A program made the position numbers and the translations under genes. Of a stretch of 64,000 nucleotides of DNA, positions 44,801-53,796 are shown in pieces. Position 1 is the stretch's first letter, and each line of letters begins with the position of its first letter. This stretch comes from Adineta vaga (Eukaryota; Animalia; Rotifera): NCBI GenBank assembly GCA_021613535.1, contig CP075496.1, forward strand, positions 4,774,001 through 4,838,000. Reading direction: 5' to 3'. A model generated the notes under the pieces. The model was not told where the DNA came from. It saw nothing but the letters and a program-made list of their open reading frames with translations, and searched no databases.

Positions 44801-47800
44801 GCAGCCAATTGTGACGGAAAAAATTCAACTTCACAAACATTTCCACAATTCAAACCATGTACAGATTCTCATAGTAATAACAATACAGATGACATTGAAC
44901 TTCAACAAGTAATTTAAAATTGATTGTATTGATAGTTATTAAAAGTCGATGTTTGTCGTTGAAATTTGTTACAGAATATATTTGATCATCTCTTTTTCTT
45001 GTATTTAGTCTTTGGACTCAGCATCGTGTATAAATAAATCAAAATTAACACCATCATCCGATCATGAACAAACTATTTCATCATCTACTTCACATCATCA
45101 AAACATCCAAGATGACGTACGTTTATTATTGTCAGATCTCGTTATTCAAGTTGATGAAACATCAAAACAATGCGAAATACTACCGACGTCGATGTTAGTT
45201 TAATCTCTATATTTAATTATTTTTACCTATTCTATCTATATGTAGATCAAACAATTCACAATCAACAATACCTCCACCTCCTCCACCACCACCATTTTTT
45301 GTGAACGTGACATCACCTTCTTCATCATCTTTTACTTCTATTCCACCACCGCCACCACCTCCTCCATTTTTGGGCTTTAGTATTCCTCCTCCACCACCGC
45401 CATCTTTTCCAAGTTCAACTGGTCCACCGCCTCCGCCTCCACCTCCACCATTTCCAGGTTTTGGTGGTCCGCCACCTCCGCCTCCACCTCCACCATTTCC
45501 TGGTTTTGGCGGTCCACCACCTCCGCCTCCACCTCCACCATTTCCAGGTTTTGGTGGTCCACCACCACCACCTCCGCCTCCACCATTTCCTGGCTTTGGT
45601 ATTACGGCAGCAGGTTCTGGTGGACCTCCACCTCCACCTCCAATGATGCCTGGATTTGGTGGTAAGGAAAAAAACTAATAAATGCTCTTCATTATTTCAA
45701 CTTATCTTCTAGCTCTACCTCAACTACCACAGTATTTACGTAAGAAGCAAAAGTATGCAGTTACAGAACCAGTTAAAAAAGTTCAATGGAGTAAAGTTAG
45801 TTTATAGTTCTAGATTTTCATTCTTTTGTTTTCATCTATGTTATTTTCTTAGATCAACCCTCATACTATCAAAAAAGACTCGATGTGGGTTCATGTCGAT
45901 GAAGAAAAGTACATTAGTGATGAACTTTTTTCAGATATTCGAAAGAATTTCGCTAGCAAAGTTGCACCAAGTAAAAGTCGATTGTCCAATGATTTTCTTC
46001 AGAATTGAAACGATAATTTTCTTTTAGCTAGACAACCTATACATGATCTTGTTGATAAATCCAAAGAATTACGTGTTCTTGATTCAAAGGCGGCACAGAA
46101 TTTCGGTAAGAATTGAATTTTCAAAAAAGCATATTTAAATTAATCGACTATTTTCTAGCTATAATGTTTAGTCAATTGAAAGCTCCACCACAAATATTTC
46201 GTGAATGGATGTTATCATGTGATAATGAGTCATTAAAAGATGATTTTCTTAAACAATTGGAAAAATATTTACCAACAGCTGAAGAATTAAAAAGTTTATC
46301 TGAATTTAAAAATGAAATCAATGATTTACAATACTCGGAACAATATTTTTGTGCAGTAAAATTTCATATAAACTCATTATGATCATGATTTATTGCAATA
46401 TTATTTTAGATCGGTGATATAAAACGTTTAAAACAACGATTAAAAACTCTTCTATTCAAATCAAGTTATAAAGAAACAGTTGAAGAAACAGACAAAGTTT
46501 GTTTCTCGAATTTTCCAAAAGAAATCCTATGTTTGTTTCTTTCTTATTTTAGGCATTAACTGAAGTTCGAACTGCTTGTGATCATGTCCGACATTCGATA
46601 AGATTTCAAAAGCTACTTGAATTAATTTTAACTATAGGAAATTATATGAATTCCAGTGCGAAATCATATGAACCTATTCATGGATTTGACATTAGTTTTT
46701 TACCCAAAGTAATTTCACATAAACATTTGGTGTATTTACATATTGAACTTATTTCAATAGCTTCATTCAACAAAAGCCAACGATGGTCGTCGAACATTAC
46801 TTCATTTTATTGTTCAAGCGATCGAAGATAAACATCGTGATTTACTTACATTCTCGGACGAATTCTATTCACTTGCTGATGGAGTATCAAAAAGTAAAAT
46901 TTCATCATTTTAATAATCCAGAAGAAAATATTTTCTATTCTAGTCAATATACTCGAATTACAGAAGCAACCGAAAGAAATCAATCGAGAATTAAAGAATG
47001 CTCGAGAAGAATTAGCGATCGCAAAAAATGTAGATGAACAAATCGAAGGAGATAAATTTGCTGAAGCAATTGAGGTTTGAAATTCACTTTCAATCATCTC
47101 TGAAAATGATTACTATTGTTTTTTCAAGGAATTTATAACTCGAGCTGATGATGATGTTGCACGATTGGAACAATTAGATGGAGAAATGACTCAAGCTTAT
47201 CAAGATCTATGTGATTTCCTAGCGATTGATCTGAAAAACTATTCTCTCAATGAATTTTTCACAGATCTCAAATCATTTTGTTCTTTCTTTTCGGTAGATC
47301 TATTTTACATCTCAAATATTATAATTCTTCTCTTTTTTTCTCATTTCATAGACATGTCTTCAAGAAGTACGTGCATGGCGTGAACAAGCTGCAAGAGCTG
47401 CTAAAACTTCGTAAGTAATTTATATTAAAAAGTTAAAATACGAGTATTAAATTACCCATAAAAACAAAACATATCTGAAAGACCTACTCGATTTAGTCAA
47501 AATCTAATGTCTACTTCGCAATACTTTGTTCGAACATCTTCTCGTCGTTTTCCTACTCGATATGATTCGACAGAAGATTTTCTCATGGCAGCTGCTGAAA
47601 GTGGTTCATGCTCATCACGTGGTTCATCTCCTTGTATAGCATATCGTCGTCAGGTAGCTTTATTGATATAATCACGCTCATAGAAACTGACATGGGACTA
47701 CGGATTGCATGTTTTTTATGTTTGACAAGAAAACTTATATCGAAATGAATGATATTCATTTGAATGTTTCTCTTCTTTTTTTCTTTAGAAGTATCCAATC

Positions 47801-47954
47801 GTCAGTCGAGAAAAGGATTCTCGATATTCCAGATGATTCCACTGTCGTTAATCGTCGTCCATTATCGCGTATTGAAGATTTGATTGATAAGCGTAAAACA
47901 AATCGTGGATTAACACCAATAAATACCCCAACAAAAAGACGATCTCAATCTTAG
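41873..47954 (+). CDS. Formin with FH1 and Diaphanous-type FH2; atypical N-terminus with DEP-like repeats
   Basis: Poly-Pro FH1 lies at ~45270-45660. FH2 reads KKVQWSKI...MWVHVDEE...KELRVLDSKAAQNFAIM...KYLPT...GNYMN...GFDISFLPKLHSTKANDGRRTLLHFI...GDKF...EFFTDL. A phase-consistent exon chain links ATG 41873 to FH1 (exons 42248, 43581, 44142, 44279, 44481, 44778, 45010, 45246). Confidence 0.85.
45421..45600 (+). repeat. Coding tandem repeat, ~42 bp unit (PPPPPPPPPFPGFGG-like), ~3-4 copies, in the formin FH1
   Basis: The sequence cctccgcctccacctccaccatttccwggttttggyggt recurs. Confidence 0.85.
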
Positions 47955-48343
47955 AGAATGATTCTATCTTCCTGTTCAAACGCTGACAATCTCATATTTA
48001 TTTTTCTTTCTTTTTCTTTTATATCCAGTGAACATTTATTTATATTCCATCAAAATTATCAATTCCTTAATATTGAGTATTTCTTACTTAATAAAATATT
48101 TCTTTTTCGTTCATTCTTCACTTCGAAATCAATGTCGAGTTTGTTTACGTTATAGAATACGTGCTATTTTTCTATGTGTTAAATTTTTTCTTTCTCTTTT
48201 CTTTTTTTTGTCTCTTCTCTATTTTCTTTTTGTCTTAATGTCATGTTATTAATCATGAAAACTAATTGATCAAAGAAATATATGCATATAAATTTTGTTG
48301 TGATGATTCTTATTGTTTGTTTTTCTCTTTAATCTTATTACAG

Positions 48344-49737
48344 ATGGACATTAGCTGTCCAGAATGTCACACGACAAAGTATCGAAATCCGAAAATGAAA
48401 TTAATGGTCAGCAAATGCGGCCATTCATTGTAGGTGATTTCGAAGAGAGAAATATTCTTTCTGTTTTAATCAATTCTTTTCTCATAGATGTGAAACTTGT
48501 GTGGATAATAAATTCAGTAAAGGTGTTGGATATTGTCCAACATGTAAAACTGAATTGAAAAAGAACGGATATCGATTTCAAATATTTGAAGATCCATTTG
48601 TAGAATTAGAAACTGACATACGGAAACGAATTCTTAAAGAGTAAGTACACATACGATCAAATGAAAACAGAAGTATAGACATTTTTACTATAGTTTTAAT
48701 CGAAAAGAACAAGATTTTACGTCGCTTGATGCTTATAATGATTACTTAGAAATGGTCGAAACTTACAGTAAGTATGATGAAATGACAAATCTTACGTCAT
48801 GACAAAGAGAAAAGAATGTTGAAATCGTATATCATATTTTTAGTATTTAATCTCACAAATAAAATCGATATCGAAGAAACGGAACGACGAATTGTTGAAT
48901 ACAAAGATGCGAATAAAGATTTAATTAATAAAAATCGTGGGAAATTAGTAAGTTAAATCTTAATGTAAAAAAAAAATGTATATTCTCTACTTATGATGAT
49001 AATTAGAGTAATGATGAAATATTTATTGAACATTTAATTGAACAAGAACGTGCAGCTGATGAAATGCGTAAACAAATCTATGAACAAGAAATTCAAAAAG
49101 AACAAGAAGCGAAACAACGCGTTAAAGATGATCTGATGTCAGCTTTAGTAAAGAATAGACATATCTTTTGTTTTGTTTTATTTCAGCAATTTTGTTTTTG
49201 TATATTTAGCTTCAGTCAGACGGTAATGTTGGTCAAATATTGAAGAAAAGTATTGAAGATCTTGAAAAAAAACGAAAAGAAGATGTTCAACCAATTATGC
49301 CCAATATGGTAAAGTTATTTTTGATAAGAAATTGAAAGAAATGTTTTTGTTGTTTAGTTGAAAAAAGAAGAAGAAATTCTGATTTCATTAACAAGTGATC
49401 AAAATCAACAGAGATTGTTTGAATATACAGTACCGGTGTATGAACATCAGGGACCTCCTATTCCTGATCGAACAGATCTTGAACAACTTGGGTACGAAAA
49501 CTTCGATATTTTATCTTTTTGAGTAAAGTAATTCATGTCGATATCTTCTTTTTTTGTAGTTATTTAGATCATATTCGTCAAGAAAAAGCAGTCGAACGTG
49601 CTGGTGGTTTTACAAGAGAGTATCCATGTTTACGAGCAATTGAAGAAGCATTCGATATGTTATTATTTGTTAAAGAAAATGTATTAAATAATGTGAAAAA
49701 AGAGTCGACATCTGAAAATGAACCTATGGAAAGTTAA
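48344..49737 (+). CDS. MNAT1: CDK-activating kinase assembly factor MAT1 (TFIIH subunit)
   Basis: RING reads [34 protein letters not shown]...CPTC. Further matches are [29 protein letters not shown], and the C-terminal [18 protein letters not shown]. Confidence 0.93.
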
Positions 49738-49801
49738 GATAATAAAATAATCTTTTTTTTTCCTCATTTTATTTCAGATAGATTGAAAGTTTTCGATCGA
49801 A
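49738..49801 (+). promoter_or_regulatory. Candidate intercistronic region: AATAAA (49741-46), U-rich tract and TTTCAG acceptor (49777)
   Basis: A 64-nt gap between the MNAT1 stop and the TRMT5 ATG contains both a poly(A) signal and a polypyrimidine/AG acceptor. Confidence 0.55.
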
Positions 49802-51178
49802 ATGCAATTAACATTACCTTTATCATTAAAAGGTATGATTGAACTTGATCGTGATCAATTTATTCAAACATTTGATGTTCCTTATGTAAATATTTCCGGT
49901 GAATGTATTCATTCATCGAAATGGAAAGATTATCTATTAATAATACATGCATTCAAAAATGTTCGTGACTTAGAAGGACGATTGAAACAAGTTTTATTCG
50001 ATCCGGAAGTCATCAAAACAAAAGAAGATATTATTAAATTCATTCCATCGATTAAAGATTATGTTGAAGAATCATTTGCTTTCACATCAATTACAATTAC
50101 ATATGAAAACTATACAATTGAACAAGTGATTAAAGCAATTATACCAGATGATTTAATGACAGATAAACGTGTTAATACAGGTTCAGGTTATAGTATTATT
50201 GGACATATTGCTCATTTTAACTTACGTGATGATGTTTTACCATATAAGAATATTATTGGTGAGTAGAAGATCAGTTTTCGTTTAGTTTTGAATAGATGAA
50301 ATTTTTATGTATGTTTTCAAGTATTGTAGCTCAAGTAATTCTTGATAAATTGTCAAATGTTAGAACAGTTGTAAATAAATTACATGAAATTGATTCTGTT
50401 TATCGTAATTTCGAATTGGAAATAATTGCTGGTGATCCAAATACAATTGTCAAATGTCGAGAAAGTAAAGCAATGTTTCAATTTGATTTTGCGAAAGTTT
50501 ATTGGAATCCTCGTCTAAGTAAGTTCATAAAATTTCTGTTCAACCTTCTGTAAGACTATCTAGTTTTGTATAGGTACAGAACATGAACGTATCATTGATA
50601 TTCTTCATTCAAATGATCTTGTTTTTGATATATTTGCTGGAGTTGGACCATTTGCTGTTCCAGCATCGATGCTAGGTTGTATTGTTTATGCAAATGATAT
50701 CAATCCTGAATGTTATAAATGGATGGAAATTAATTTGAAAAAGAATCAACCGAAAAAATCACCGAAAGAGTATCATATATACAATCTTGATGGACGAGAA
50801 TTTCTACAAACAATTGCGTTACCGCAAATAGAAATCTATCAAAATGAACTTTTGAATAATTCAGACGAGTATCGAAATGTATTGCAGAAAAAAATTGTGA
50901 TCATAATGAATTTACCTGCACTTGCTTTAACATTTTTGGATGTTGTTTCTAATTGGTTATCGAACAACACGGTGGAAAAAGAAAAATGGATGATGCCAAT
51001 TCATATTCATTGTTATACATTTTCGAGAGCAGATGATCGTATGGAAGATGTTCGATTACAATTAAAAACAATCATACCGAATATTCATGATGATCATATA
51101 TCATGTCGATTTGTTCGAAAAGTAGCACCAAACAAAGATATGATGTGTGCGCATCTACGTATATTTGAGAAAAAATAA
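49802..51178 (+). CDS. TRMT5: tRNA (guanine(37)-N1)-methyltransferase Trm5 (3 exons)
   Basis: Contains GMIELDRDQF, SGYSIIGHIAHFNLRD, RTVVNK...YRNF, FDFAKVYWNPRLSTEHER, DIFAGVGPFAVP, VYANDINP, IMNLP and VRKVAPNKDMMC. Confidence 0.93.
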
Positions 51179-51250
51179 TGATTTAAAAAAAATATTCTTT
51201 GTGTTTTGATTTCTATAAAAAAAATAGCAATGATATTTTCATTCTTGTAG

Positions 51251-52009
51251 ATGTCTTCTTCAATGAATTTAATTAAAACTATTTTGATCGAGGGTAATTT
51301 TGAAATTATTGTTTGAAAGTATGTTAATTCTTAGAATATCCGATTAGGTAATATCGGTGTTGGAAAATCAACAATAATGTCTCATATTGCATCATCATAT
51401 CCATCGAATCTTGTTCAAGTTCATTGTGAACCTGTCGAAAATTGGATGAATATTAAAGGTTTCGATCTTCTCAATGCTTTATATAGTGAAAGTACTCGAT
51501 GGACATTTACATTTGAATTGACAGCACTTTTATCACGAATTAAAAATCATATGAATTCTGTATCAAATCGTCATATTAATATTTTTGAACGTTCGATTCT
51601 CAGTTGTTTTCATGTATTTATTGATAATGATCGTGAACAAAATTATTTAAATGATGCTGAATATCGAATTCTTCAAAATCATTATGATTATGGTCTTGAA
51701 AGAACTCTAGATTTGTCCACAACAGCAATTCTGTACTTTGATCTATCACCAAAACAATGTTATGAACGAATTCTTAAACGATCAAGACAATCCGAATCAT
51801 CCATTGATTTAAAACGTCTTGAAGAATTGAAATTTCATTATGATAAATTCATTAAAAACTTTACTTTATGTCCTGTAAAAATTATCGATGCATCTCAATC
51901 ACTCGAAGAAACATATAAACAAATTGATTCCTTACTAAATCAATTTCTTACACAAAATGAAAATCAATCAGATAGTGAATTAAATTATAAGAAAAGCAAA
52001 TACAACTAA
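51251..52009 (+). CDS. Deoxynucleoside kinase (dNK/TK2/dCK family), 2 exons
   Basis: The P-loop IEG|NIGVGKST is split by intron 51295-51348. Also present are EPVENW, the ERS motif and the lid RILKRSRQSE. Confidence 0.9.
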
Positions 52010-52243
52010 ATCATTCTATATATATATCAAATCTAATCGTAAATGGTATTAGTTATGCGTCGGATTCGCTCAGGTGATTTTCCTTTTCTGTTTTTTTACG
52101 ATAAGGAAGAAAAACAATTGTTGTTTTCTTTTGTTACGAATAAATTGAATCACCCCGTAGTCAAAGGGTCGAGATACGTAATTGATGATAAACTTTGACA
52201 TACACATATGTTTATTACAAATAATTGATTATAACAAAATAAA

Positions 52244-53796
52244 TTAAGAAGGTAATAAAAAAGGCATTTGACGATAAAATGTTGCATCGTTCAATGGGAG
52301 ATCAAGTTTCGATCTATTCAATATAAGTTCTTCTAAACATTGATACGCAATTGGATCGGCATTTAAATGAAATTTATTAGCAAATAGTTCATGACGATTA
52401 AATAATGTTGAAAGATCAACTGTACCAAATACACATATACCACGTATGATACGTCCATAACAATTTCGTTCACCCCAATTTACAAATCGAGCTGTCCAAT
52501 TAGTCGGATCAGTTTTAGCTAAACAAAATTTGAATAAGTCATTTTTCTTCGACTTTCAATTGAATATAAAAATGATGAAACTTTTCTCTATAGAGACTTT
52601 TAGTTTTGTTTTACTACTTAATTATTCAATTATACATACCTTTGTAACCTCCCGGAGGATTTAAATGTGTATTATAATTCAATGTTGCCCAATAATGTTC
52701 ATCAGGACTATAAGTATCACGCGACCAATCTAATAATTCTTTAGCTATAGGACTTGTATGAACAAACTCAATGAAAGCTCGTGAAAAAGCACCTAAATCG
52801 AACGAAAAAAAATCTTTTCATTTTAATTAACTTGATTAAGAAAACAAATGACGTACCATATGCTGAACCTTTAACAATTTCCATATTACCCGGTGGTGGC
52901 TTTTTCTTTTCATTTGTTTTTCTCAATTGTGGTACTTGTTCTTGATTTCCTCTAACTGTGTCAATAACTTGCCAAACATATTCTGTTCGATGGGGATTTT
53001 TCGATTTCCATCGTCCTTCAATATCATTATATCCACGATAGATTTTCAAAATTTTAACTAATTCACTATTTGTTTTCAATGGTAATTCGGTGTTAGCAGC
53101 ATTTAATAGATATTTCCATGAGGGATATTTTATTAAATCTTCCATACAATTGATATCAGCTTGTAAACGTGAAAAAGTTGCATATAAAACTTTTTCTTGT
53201 TTACTGGAAAGAATGACATTATTAAAACATTGAATAATTGATTTTACAGCTTGTAAAACAATTGGTAATGCATCTTTATCAACGTGTACACAATAAAAAT
53301 TTTGTGGACGATATAAAACACGTAAGAGACGTTCGAATTGTTCAACATTTTCATACATAAGAATAGAAAAGGCTAAAGGAAATTGTCGATTAATCGATGT
53401 ATCTTCTTGATGAAATTTTTCATTAAACCGTTCTAAACGATAATTTTGACATTGATCTTTTGTTATGTTATAAGATTCATCCGAAATTAGCGATGGATTT
53501 TTTAAATCAGATAGAACTGCTAGAGCATGTTTCAATTCATCCGAATCACTTTCATATAGATTTTGACATGAAATTGGATAATAATAAGGTTGTAAATGTT
53601 TAAAAGGTTTGCTATTTGAAGTTCTTATATGATCGTTTTCATTTGTTGAAATATCTATCGACGGAAATTTAATATCCGTCGAAGTTGTATCATGTCGTTT
53701 CAAAAATGTTAAATGAATAAATTCAAAAATGAAAAATATTGAGAGAAAAAACAAGCAATTGTTTCGAAATAAACGACGATTGATTGTAAACTGCAT
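52244..53796 (-). CDS. Core-2/I-branching beta-1,6-N-acetylglucosaminyltransferase (GT14/GCNT family), 3 exons
   Basis: Type II TM N-terminus, then FPLAFSIL...[39 protein letters not shown] and KGSAY. Later exons contain [13 protein letters not shown] and RGICVFG...LFANKF. Confidence 0.9.

Follow-up and report, generated by a model that had tools for sequence, protein, structure and literature searches.

Gene content of the locus

The 64,000-nt stretch of Adineta vaga DNA analysed here (the window, to which all positions refer) carries on its + strand three intron-bearing genes arranged head to tail, namely, MAT1 (MNAT1), TRM5 (TRMT5) and a deoxynucleoside kinase gene (dNK), as read from the sequence and its list of open reading frames (Table 1). 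Gene identities were assigned by searching Pfam with each exon separately, which returned the domains MAT1 and CAK-anch_MAT1 for the first gene, TYW2_N_2 and TRM5-TYW2_MTfase for the second and dNK for the third. MAT1 aligns with its Rotaria orthologue in eight matching segments (tblastx), relatives of TRM5 bear the name tRNA (guanine(37)-N1)-methyltransferase, and dNK is 67-82% identical to its bdelloid orthologues. The borders of the TRM5 exons (49802-50258, 50330-50518 and 50574-51178) were obtained by reading the window sequence against a spliced relative (L019). In all three genes the introns are of the GT-AG type and about 50-70 nt long, and the A+T content of the region is about 72%. 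An earlier sequence-only reading had described three co-oriented, unrelated housekeeping genes separated by only 64 and 72 nt, and the sequence, the open reading frames and the Pfam assignments all agree with this description.

The cluster is preceded by a formin gene, whose orthologues in Rotaria and A. ricciae are annotated with the FH2 domain (PF02181); this gene is probably a separate transcription unit. The next gene after dNK belongs to the Branch family and is convergent with the cluster. Branch likewise has the opposite orientation in the annotation of A. steineri and in the gene calls for a metagenome contig with a near-identical dNK (L036).

Table 1. Features of the MAT1-TRM5-dNK locus and its flanks, in window coordinates
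Feature	Position	Strand	Details
Formin (FH2), last exon and stop	47790-47954	+	TAG stop 47952-47954; upstream context
AATAAA, likely formin poly(A) signal	48091-48096	+	137 nt past formin stop; putative function
Two conserved non-coding blocks	48161-48183, 48230-48278	+	MAFFT alignment; between formin poly(A) signal and MAT1
Candidate trans-splice acceptor of first gene	AG 48342-48343	+	ttattacAG adjoining MAT1 ATG
MAT1/MNAT1 CDS, 8 exons	48344-49737	+	Pfam PF06391, PF25811; TAA stop 49735-49737
Gap 1, 64 nt	49738-49801	+	AATAAA 49741-49746; T9 49753-49761; AGs 49776-49777, 49780-49781
TRM5/TRMT5 tRNA (guanine37-N1)-methyltransferase, 3 exons	49802-51178	+	Pfam PF25133, PF02475; TAA stop 51176-51178
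Gap 2, 72 nt	51179-51250	+	TATAAA 51214-51219; acceptor block 51236-51250
dNK, 2 exons (51251-51293, 51348-52009)	51251-52009	+	Pfam PF01712, E 6e-40
AATAAA, likely 3' end of unit	52139-52144	+	about 130 nt past dNK stop

Signals at the gene junctions

The two gaps and the region ahead of MAT1 have the composition that the sequence-only reading had given them. Gap 1, between MAT1 and TRM5, holds an AATAAA starting 3 nt past the MAT1 stop (gap position 4), a U-tract and the acceptor-like tatttcAG 24 nt ahead of the TRM5 ATG; a further AG (atAG) lies 20 nt ahead of it. In gap 2, between TRM5 and dNK, the sequence ttcttgtAG directly adjoins the dNK ATG (AG at 51249-51250). The only poly(A)-signal-like word of this gap is TATAAA, 29 nt before the AG, and the canonical AATAAA is absent from it in A. 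vaga. An 18-nt block of gap 2 that includes the ATG occurs only once in the A. vaga genome. The MAT1 ATG, too, adjoins an AG, that of ttattacAG, and lies 389 nt from the stop codon of formin.

Acceptor-like sequences in the gaps are not accompanied by donors. Both gaps contain a conserved polypyrimidine-YAG element and neither contains a GTAAGT-like donor; the GT sites within them (GTGTTT, GTTTTG) differ from the real donors of the locus, which are GTAAGT-like. For gap 2, a mini-intron of about 50 nt removed in cis (GTGTTT...AG) was considered and ruled out by its poor donor. The donor-like gttaag at 49733, for which the sequence-only reading had found no in-frame fusion, indeed fails on reading the sequence: joined to either gap-1 acceptor it leads out of frame with TRM5 or to a stop.

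Between the formin poly(A) signal, which has a similar counterpart at the aligned position in a duplicate of this region (see below), and MAT1 lie two conserved non-coding blocks. Block 1 is common to Adineta, Rotaria and the duplicate region, where it is located upstream of the TRM5 copy. The blocks are a candidate for a shared promoter or 5' control region.

Conservation among bdelloids

The order formin, MAT1, TRM5, dNK is also found in Rotaria and in other Adineta genomes, and the conservation of gene order and of the gaps, which the sequence-only reading had named as a check, holds in both genera. The full MAT1-TRM5-dNK order is present in A. vaga, in both Rotaria (R. socialis and Rotaria sp. 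Silwood1) and in the contigs L023, L027 and L028. The TRM5-dNK junction with its short gap is kept in Adineta (A. vaga, A. steineri and contigs in which dNK groups with that of A. ricciae at a clustering level of at least 90%) as well as in R. socialis and Rotaria sp. Silwood1. At the A. steineri locus only the C-terminal exon of TRM5 and dNK could be placed. The flanks of the Didymodactylos TRM5, found on one short contig, contain neither MAT1 nor dNK.

Gap 1 measures 44-69 nt across 5 loci and gap 2 measures 48-114 nt across 10. In Rotaria sp. Silwood1, where formin and MAT1 come first, the gaps are 69 nt (before TRM5) and 114 nt (before dNK); in R. socialis they are 44 and 65 nt, in metagenome bdelloid contigs 51-57 nt and 48-77 nt, and the A. 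steineri gap is 97 nt. For comparison, published intergenic distances have a median of 0.8 kb in A. vaga and of 1.4-2.7 kb in Rotaria (PMC5916493), so that the gaps of the A. vaga cluster are more than ten times shorter than the median of this genome. In the annotated loci, same-strand gaps outside the cluster (n = 11) range from 205 to 2247 nt. Genome-wide spacing of open reading frames was unsuited as a background, since successive exons within a gene look like tail-to-head pairs.

The signals within the gaps are conserved as well. The AATAAA of gap 1 is located 2-3 nt past the MAT1 stop (gap positions 3-4) in three of the five loci, and the gap-1 acceptor, TTATTYYAG followed by ATA, is kept in all five, its distance to the TRM5 ATG varying from 6 to 26 nt. 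In gap 2 a block of about 45 nt is conserved, which ends in TTGYAG immediately followed by ATG at every one of the 10 loci. At seven of these loci AATAAA lies 19-20 nt ahead of the AG. Read across gaps and relatives, the distance from the poly(A) signal to the next acceptor is 19-29 nt. The MAT1 ATG is directly preceded by CAG in A. vaga, Rotaria sp. Silwood1 and L027, and by CAA in R. socialis. An acceptor-like YAG in a T-rich gap of 64-72 nt is not significant in one genome; the significant part is that both the tiny gaps and the acceptors have been conserved across genera.

Spliced leader genes and transcripts

[quoted passage not shown] Searching the A. vaga genome with the published rotifer SL (PMC3795323, Table 1) recovered about 59 near-exact copies, compared with 0-1 for a reversed control pattern. 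The SL ends in ...CTTACCAAGAG, and in the one genomic copy that was read it is directly followed by a GTAAAT donor. Minor SL variants are also present in the genome. We know of no operon-specific leader in rotifers.

All database matches for the A-type cluster, that is, the cluster of the window and its counterparts, are genomic DNA, open reading frames or gene models, and no transcript of it was found among the protein-index matches to dNK exon 2, TRM5 exon 1 and the C-terminal part of TRM5. Four sequences with an uninterrupted dNK (L009, L010, L036 and L037) were considered as transcripts and rejected, as they contain the TRM5 intron and Branch exons; dNK is uninterrupted in these genomic sequences because their lineage has lost the dNK intron.

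An ancient duplicate of the region

A. vaga (C1), A. ricciae and Rotaria also have a second, anciently duplicated version of the region (B), consisting of formin-B, a spacer of 200-311 nt, TRM5-B and then a convergent Branch gene. MAT1 and dNK are gone from it and TRM5 survives alone; no MAT1 remnant was found in the duplicate region. TRM5-B now stands behind conserved upstream block 1 and has also kept the gap-1-type acceptor. A word resembling block 2, TAATTGAT, was seen by eye in the duplicate region and was not aligned by MAFFT.

TRM5-B is expressed in another bdelloid, from which two spliced RNA contigs (L019 and L020) derive. Both begin within 1-2 nt of the gap-1-type acceptor and carry no SL bases. 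The loss of MAT1-B and dNK-B shows that the trio can be broken up. A link in function of TFIIH/CAK with tRNA modification and dNTP salvage, as drawn by the sequence-only reading, finds no support beyond co-location; the duplicate TRM5 survives without MAT1 or dNK. The pair of regions amounts to a natural deletion experiment on operon decay after genome duplication.

Interpretation of the cluster

We consider that MAT1, TRM5 and dNK probably constitute a three-gene SL operon of the tunicate type in A. vaga. Transcription by RNA polymerase II would begin within the stretch of roughly 250 nt that separates the formin poly(A) signal from MAT1 and would run through all three genes, yielding a single precursor. 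The upstream messages would be cleaved and polyadenylated in the gaps, at AATAAA in gap 1 and at TATAAA in gap 2 (AATAAA in most relatives), and the downstream messages would gain their 5' end and cap from the 22-23 nt rotifer SL, trans-spliced to the conserved acceptor, which lies 20-24 nt ahead of the ATG in the case of TRM5 and adjoins the ATG in that of dNK. With poly(A) signals only 19-29 nt before the next acceptor, the polymerase would have to read into the next gene. From these features we infer the polycistronic precursor, the SL addition at the gap acceptors, the site of the promoter and that polyadenylation is coupled to trans-splicing. Gene order, short gaps, acceptors, putative poly(A) signals and SL genes all fit the SL-resolved operon that the sequence-only reading had suggested, and the proposal is thereby supported in part. 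Synteny by itself is no proof, because it reaches formin, which is probably outside the operon. Counting against an operon are the CAA before the MAT1 ATG of R. socialis, the flanks of the Didymodactylos gene, the lack of AATAAA in gap 2 of A. vaga and the disappearance of MAT1 and dNK from the duplicate region.

An account that we regard as possible, though unlikely, is that the genes are three independent, tightly packed units, the promoters of TRM5 and dNK being located in the gap or in the 3' part of the upstream gene. The messages might then still acquire an SL, or their 5' UTRs might simply be very short, and what is conserved in the gaps would be poly(A) signals and elements of the core promoter. 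A core promoter of dNK can be read in gap 2 of A. vaga, where TATAAAA lies about 27 nt before an initiator-like TCATTC, and a TATA-like word (TATAAA or TATACA) is found in gap 2 of relatives as well. However, in several relatives this word is TATACA and the presumed start follows it by only about 25 nt, and no TATA-like word precedes the gap-1 element in two of the five loci (L023 and R. socialis L032). That element, TTATTCTAG followed by ATA, corresponds to an acceptor rather than an initiator, a YAG at the ATG in all 10 gap-2 loci is what a splice site predicts, and a branch point would not fit between the AG and a start 10-15 nt ahead of it. SL trans-splicing needs no operon, some C. elegans operons have internal promoters, and TRM5-B works without MAT1 upstream, which is all compatible with separate units. 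Even so, the upstream poly(A) signal is so near that read-through into the next gene would be unavoidable, and the gaps remain at 44-114 nt even in Rotaria, despite typical intergenic DNA there of 1.4-2.7 kb.

The cluster might also reflect neutral compaction of a gene-dense genome, with acceptor-like and AATAAA-like words arising by chance in T/A-rich DNA and having no role in RNA processing. At about 72% A+T, YAG and A-rich hexamers are frequent, and the order is conserved for the adjacent formin too, but chance would hardly keep the gap-2 block of about 45 nt and the gap-1 acceptor across genera with protein identities of only about 70%, nor a poly(A)-signal-to-AG spacing of 19-20 nt in seven of 10 loci, and the gaps have not expanded in Rotaria. 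We find this account improbable. Still less credible is cis-splicing, whereby read-through from a donor in the upstream gene would produce fusion proteins (e.g. TRM5-dNK) or 5'-UTR introns. In its favour stand two public gene models: A. ricciae P0159 joins TRM5 (...SCRF) to the start of dNK (MSSLNL...) via the gap-2 acceptor, and a 649-aa model of A. steineri spans the MAT1-TRM5 interval. Yet the 'donor' of the former is the GT of a conserved valine codon (GTTCGA in A. vaga), dissimilar to the GTAAGT-like donors of the locus, the fusion would remove the conserved C-terminus of TRM5, and gap-1 fusions are out of frame. As for the A. steineri model, tblastn places only the C-terminal exon of TRM5, and the interval contains 100 N. 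Fusion models of this sort resemble annotation artefacts imposed by gaps as small as these; for annotation this means that public models in A. ricciae, and possibly in A. steineri, fuse or mis-join genes of this cluster.

Beyond this locus, we lean slightly towards the view that bdelloids possess true tunicate-type SL operons, that MAT1-TRM5-dNK predates the split between Adineta and Rotaria, that the poly(A) signal became fixed 19-20 nt before the acceptor, and that genes were lost singly after the ancient genome duplication. If so, formation of the 3' end of one message and of the 5' end of the next would be mechanically coupled, and loss of operon genes one by one would have been possible because the remaining genes kept a shared promoter and an acceptor of their own. 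Rotifers would then be another animal phylum with operons. Rotifer operons are given as 'not determined' in PMC2481426, and according to PMC7986045 operons 'have not been reported' in rotifers.

Comparison with known operons

The closest likeness of the proposed operon is to those of tunicates. In Ciona intestinalis and Oikopleura dioica, operons consist of unrelated genes, for the most part housekeeping ones, in head-to-tail order and are served by one kind of SL; very little or no intercistronic sequence separates the genes, and the upstream poly(A) signal is located just before the downstream trans-splice acceptor. In the A. vaga cluster and its relatives the putative poly(A) signal lies 19-29 nt before the next acceptor. 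The two systems differ in phylum and in SL sequence, the rotifer gaps are 44-114 nt compared with nearly zero in tunicates, and the rotifer case is made from sequence alone. In the SL2 operons of C. elegans, same-strand genes about 100 nt apart are separated by AAUAAA, a U-rich stretch and an acceptor, to which the AATAAA, T9 and TTTCAG of gap 1 correspond; the specialised SL2 family that serves downstream genes there is a nematode feature.

Rotifers belong to Gnathifera. So do chaetognaths as treated in PMC12460157, which reports operons in Paraspadella gotoi, called from gaps of less than 250 bp, considers trans-splicing to have evolved independently and contains no rotifer operon analysis. 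Operonic genes of P. gotoi serve basic metabolism (nitrogen, protein) and are depleted in development and signalling genes (PMC12460157). Those operons were demonstrated genome-wide with RNA data (PMC12460157), whereas the A. vaga cluster is known from its DNA only. As in P. gotoi, the cluster proposed here would be resolved without an operon-specific SL. If rotifers do have operons, this touches on the question of whether those of rotifers and chaetognaths have separate origins or were inherited from a common gnathiferan ancestor.

Gene content and layout of the cluster

Positions 47600-52600 of the window (G000:C4:4774001-4838000, within the 100.8-Mb, six-contig assembly of A. vaga), where A+T content is ~72%, contain four genes in the same orientation, whose introns are short and of the GT-AG type. 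The sequence-only reading had proposed that the last three, MAT1, TRM5 and dNK, constitute an operon resolved by spliced-leader (SL) trans-splicing. Its gene coordinates proved correct upon reading of the sequence and Pfam searches, which were run one exon at a time. The sizes of the MAT1-TRM5 interval (gap 1) and the TRM5-dNK interval (gap 2) were likewise as described, and MAT1 indeed starts close to the formin stop codon, at a distance of 389 nt. The motifs reported in gap 1 are present at their sites, TTGTAG adjoins the ATG of dNK and TTACAG that of MAT1. Within the formin gene, GC content rises sharply to as much as 0.59 (GC skew ~-0.5 to -0.6) in an island that is probably the proline-rich FH1 region.

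Features of the cluster, its duplicate and a spliced leader gene (window positions unless a contig is named)
Feature	Position	Strand	Evidence or remark
GC-rich island in formin gene	45200-45800
FH2 formin, 3' end	stop 47952-47954	+	5' of MAT1; orthologues with PF02181
MAT1	48344-49737	+	Pfam, per exon: MAT1 and CAK-anchor domain
gttaag	49733
Gap 1	49738-49801		64 nt
AATAAA in gap 1	49741-49746
T9 run in gap 1	49753-49761
AG of TTTCAG in gap 1	49776-49777
TAG following TTTCAG	49780-49781
TRM5	49802-51178	+	Pfam, per exon: TYW2 N-terminal and TRM5/TYW2 methyltransferase domains
Gap 2	51179-51250		72 nt
dNK	51251-52009	+	Pfam, per exon: deoxynucleoside kinase, E 6e-40
Branch-family glycosyltransferase	3' of dNK	convergent
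TRM5-B	G000:C1:7883092-7884639 (L017:8092-9639)	minus
TRM5 paralogue P0046	C1		database protein labelled Adineta vaga
SL RNA gene (example)	C1:2551160-2551336 (L001:1350-1720)

Conservation of gene order and gaps across bdelloids

Both gene order and tight spacing hold across bdelloid genera. The Rotaria sp. Silwood1 annotation has formin, MAT1, a 69-nt gap, TRM5, a 114-nt gap and dNK; R. socialis has the identical order, gaps 1 and 2 measuring 44 and 65 nt once the dNK start is moved to the ATG 3' of CAG. Gap 2 is 97 nt long in A. steineri and 48-77 nt in further contigs, namely, L009 and L010, in which dNK clusters at >=90% with an A. ricciae protein, and five more metagenome contigs. Altogether, gap 1 spans 44-69 nt (5 loci) and gap 2 spans 48-114 nt (10 loci). 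Every cluster gap is shorter than the 11 same-strand gaps measured outside the cluster in the annotated loci (205-2247 nt), and also falls below the median intergenic distance published for A. vaga (0.8 kb), A. ricciae (0.6 kb) and two Rotaria species (1.4-2.7 kb) (Nowell et al. 2018, PMC5916493); no expansion is seen in Rotaria.

The single dNK intron has been lost in one lineage (L009:724-1386, L010, L036 and L037, with dNK clustering at >=90% with an A. ricciae protein), where gap 2 is only 48 nt long and TTTCAG still adjoins the ATG. A 3.1-kb contig of Didymodactylos carnosus (L030) carries a TRM5 copy without an AG beside its ATG, and neither MAT1, formin nor dNK is found within 968 nt upstream and 517 nt downstream. 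The cluster might postdate the bdelloid root; alternatively, this TRM5 could be a different paralogue.

The gaps themselves contain conserved elements. Gap 1 has a conserved acceptor, TTATTYYAG|ATA, at a variable distance (6 to 26 nt) from the ATG; in three of its five loci, AATAAA begins 2-3 nt past the MAT1 stop codon, at gap positions 3-4. Gap 2 has a ~45-nt block common to Adineta and Rotaria, which ends with TTGYAG|ATG in most loci and with YAG|ATG in all ten; AATAAA lies 19-20 nt 5' of the AG in seven of them, and A. vaga has TATAAA rather than AATAAA, 29 nt 5' of the AG. The 18-nt core of the block occurs once in the genome and is thus not a repeat. Since the cluster proteins are only ~65-80% identical between the two genera, conservation of these non-coding elements points to selection acting on them. 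Before the MAT1 ATG, R. socialis has TTTCAA (L032:7000-7051), as opposed to CAG in A. vaga, Rotaria sp. Silwood1 and contig L027; if trans-spliced, R. socialis MAT1 must use another acceptor, e.g. TTGTAG ~35 nt upstream.

Spliced leader genes in A. vaga

Using the rotifer SL sequence (PMC3795323, Table 1) as a query, we found ~59 near-exact copies in the A. vaga genome, compared to 0-1 for the reversed control; the same pattern search detected none within the window. In the one copy read, a GTAAAT donor follows the SL. The copies and the donor indicate that the machinery for SL trans-splicing, which the sequence-only reading had ascribed to bdelloids, is present in A. vaga. SL RNA genes reside on all contigs of the assembly except C3, often as head-to-head pairs with SL starts ~154 bp apart, and form clusters on C5 and C2. 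Minor variants carry C>A at position 10 (~9 copies) or position 13 (3 copies).

The duplicate region

A. vaga has one MAT1, one dNK and two TRM5 genes, the second (TRM5-B, 65% identity) being located in the duplicate (B) region on C1, where formin-B is followed by ~265 nt, TRM5-B and a convergent Branch gene. Because A. ricciae and Rotaria sp. Silwood1 share this arrangement, loss of MAT1-B and dNK-B predates the split of these genera, and no MAT1 remnant is left in the region. Several elements of the window region persist in the B spacer. The formin 3' UTR has the same conserved beginning, and non-coding block 1 (GCTATTTTT...GTT), located in the window 3' of the formin poly(A) signal and 5' of MAT1, is present. 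So are a short word resembling block 2 (TAATTGAT), which was spotted by eye and not aligned by MAFFT, and an acceptor aligning with that of gap 1. TRM5-B is expressed in another bdelloid, as seen from two spliced Logan RNA contigs, both starting within 1-2 nt of this acceptor when placed via a matching genomic contig. Since SL bases are absent from both, neither is proof of trans-splicing. For the window-type cluster, the word-search protein matches and the cluster listing included no transcript contig. A. vaga TRM5-B is extended in frame at its N-terminus (MSVFSHRFFRSLRQ), possibly by a mitochondrial presequence. The extension derives from a stretch whose homologue in the window TRM5 is 5' UTR; the counterpart in related species (L019-L021) is instead a short upstream ORF.

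Alternative explanations and the proposed mechanism

The main alternative is that each gene has its own promoter, dNK being served by a TATA-like box and, ~27 nt downstream of it, TCATTC as an initiator-like element. This matches gap 2 of A. vaga, but poorly matches the relatives and gap 1, and leaves the invariant YAG at the ATG unexplained. The B region is what an operon would predict, as any gene could be lost provided that the common promoter stayed along with the acceptor of the gene left behind, although promoter capture, under the main alternative, could also account for it. Alternatively, neighboring genes might be joined by cis-splicing, as in A. ricciae gene model P0159; however, the GT used as donor in this model belongs to a valine codon, and such fusions look like annotation artefacts. 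Within the gaps, GT occurs only as GTGTTT and GTTTTG, unlike the GTAAGT-like donors of the real introns here, so the gap acceptors lack a plausible cis partner; gttaag near the MAT1 end cannot yield an in-frame TRM5 fusion, as the sequence-only reading had noted. Public models fusing cluster neighbors (P0159, P0031 and A. steineri L011:1668-5903) include a TRM5-dNK protein of 397 aa and a 649-aa model covering the MAT1-TRM5 interval across 100 N; in addition, a chimera on another contig combines the dNK N-terminus with the TRM5 C-terminus. These are probably artefacts of tiny gaps or of assembly.

The layout described by the sequence-only reading is confirmed, and its interpretation as a polycistronic unit is partly supported, by gaps, order and acceptors conserved across genera and by the presence of SL genes; we consider it somewhat more likely than not that MAT1-TRM5-dNK is an SL-resolved operon. 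Rotifer operons are given as "not determined" in PMC2481426 and are not reported according to PMC7986045; Nowell et al. 2018 (PMC5916493) mention neither operons nor trans-splicing, and a 2025 chaetognath paper (PMC12460157) names rotifers only in passing. In the SL-resolved operon, transcription would start in the ~250 nt 5' of MAT1 and run through all three genes, upstream messages would be cleaved and polyadenylated within the gaps, and downstream messages would be capped through trans-splicing of the SL to the conserved AG acceptors. As the poly(A) signals precede the following acceptor by no more than 19-29 nt, the polymerase would have to read into the next gene, and 3'-end formation and trans-splicing are therefore probably coupled, in the manner of tunicate operons.
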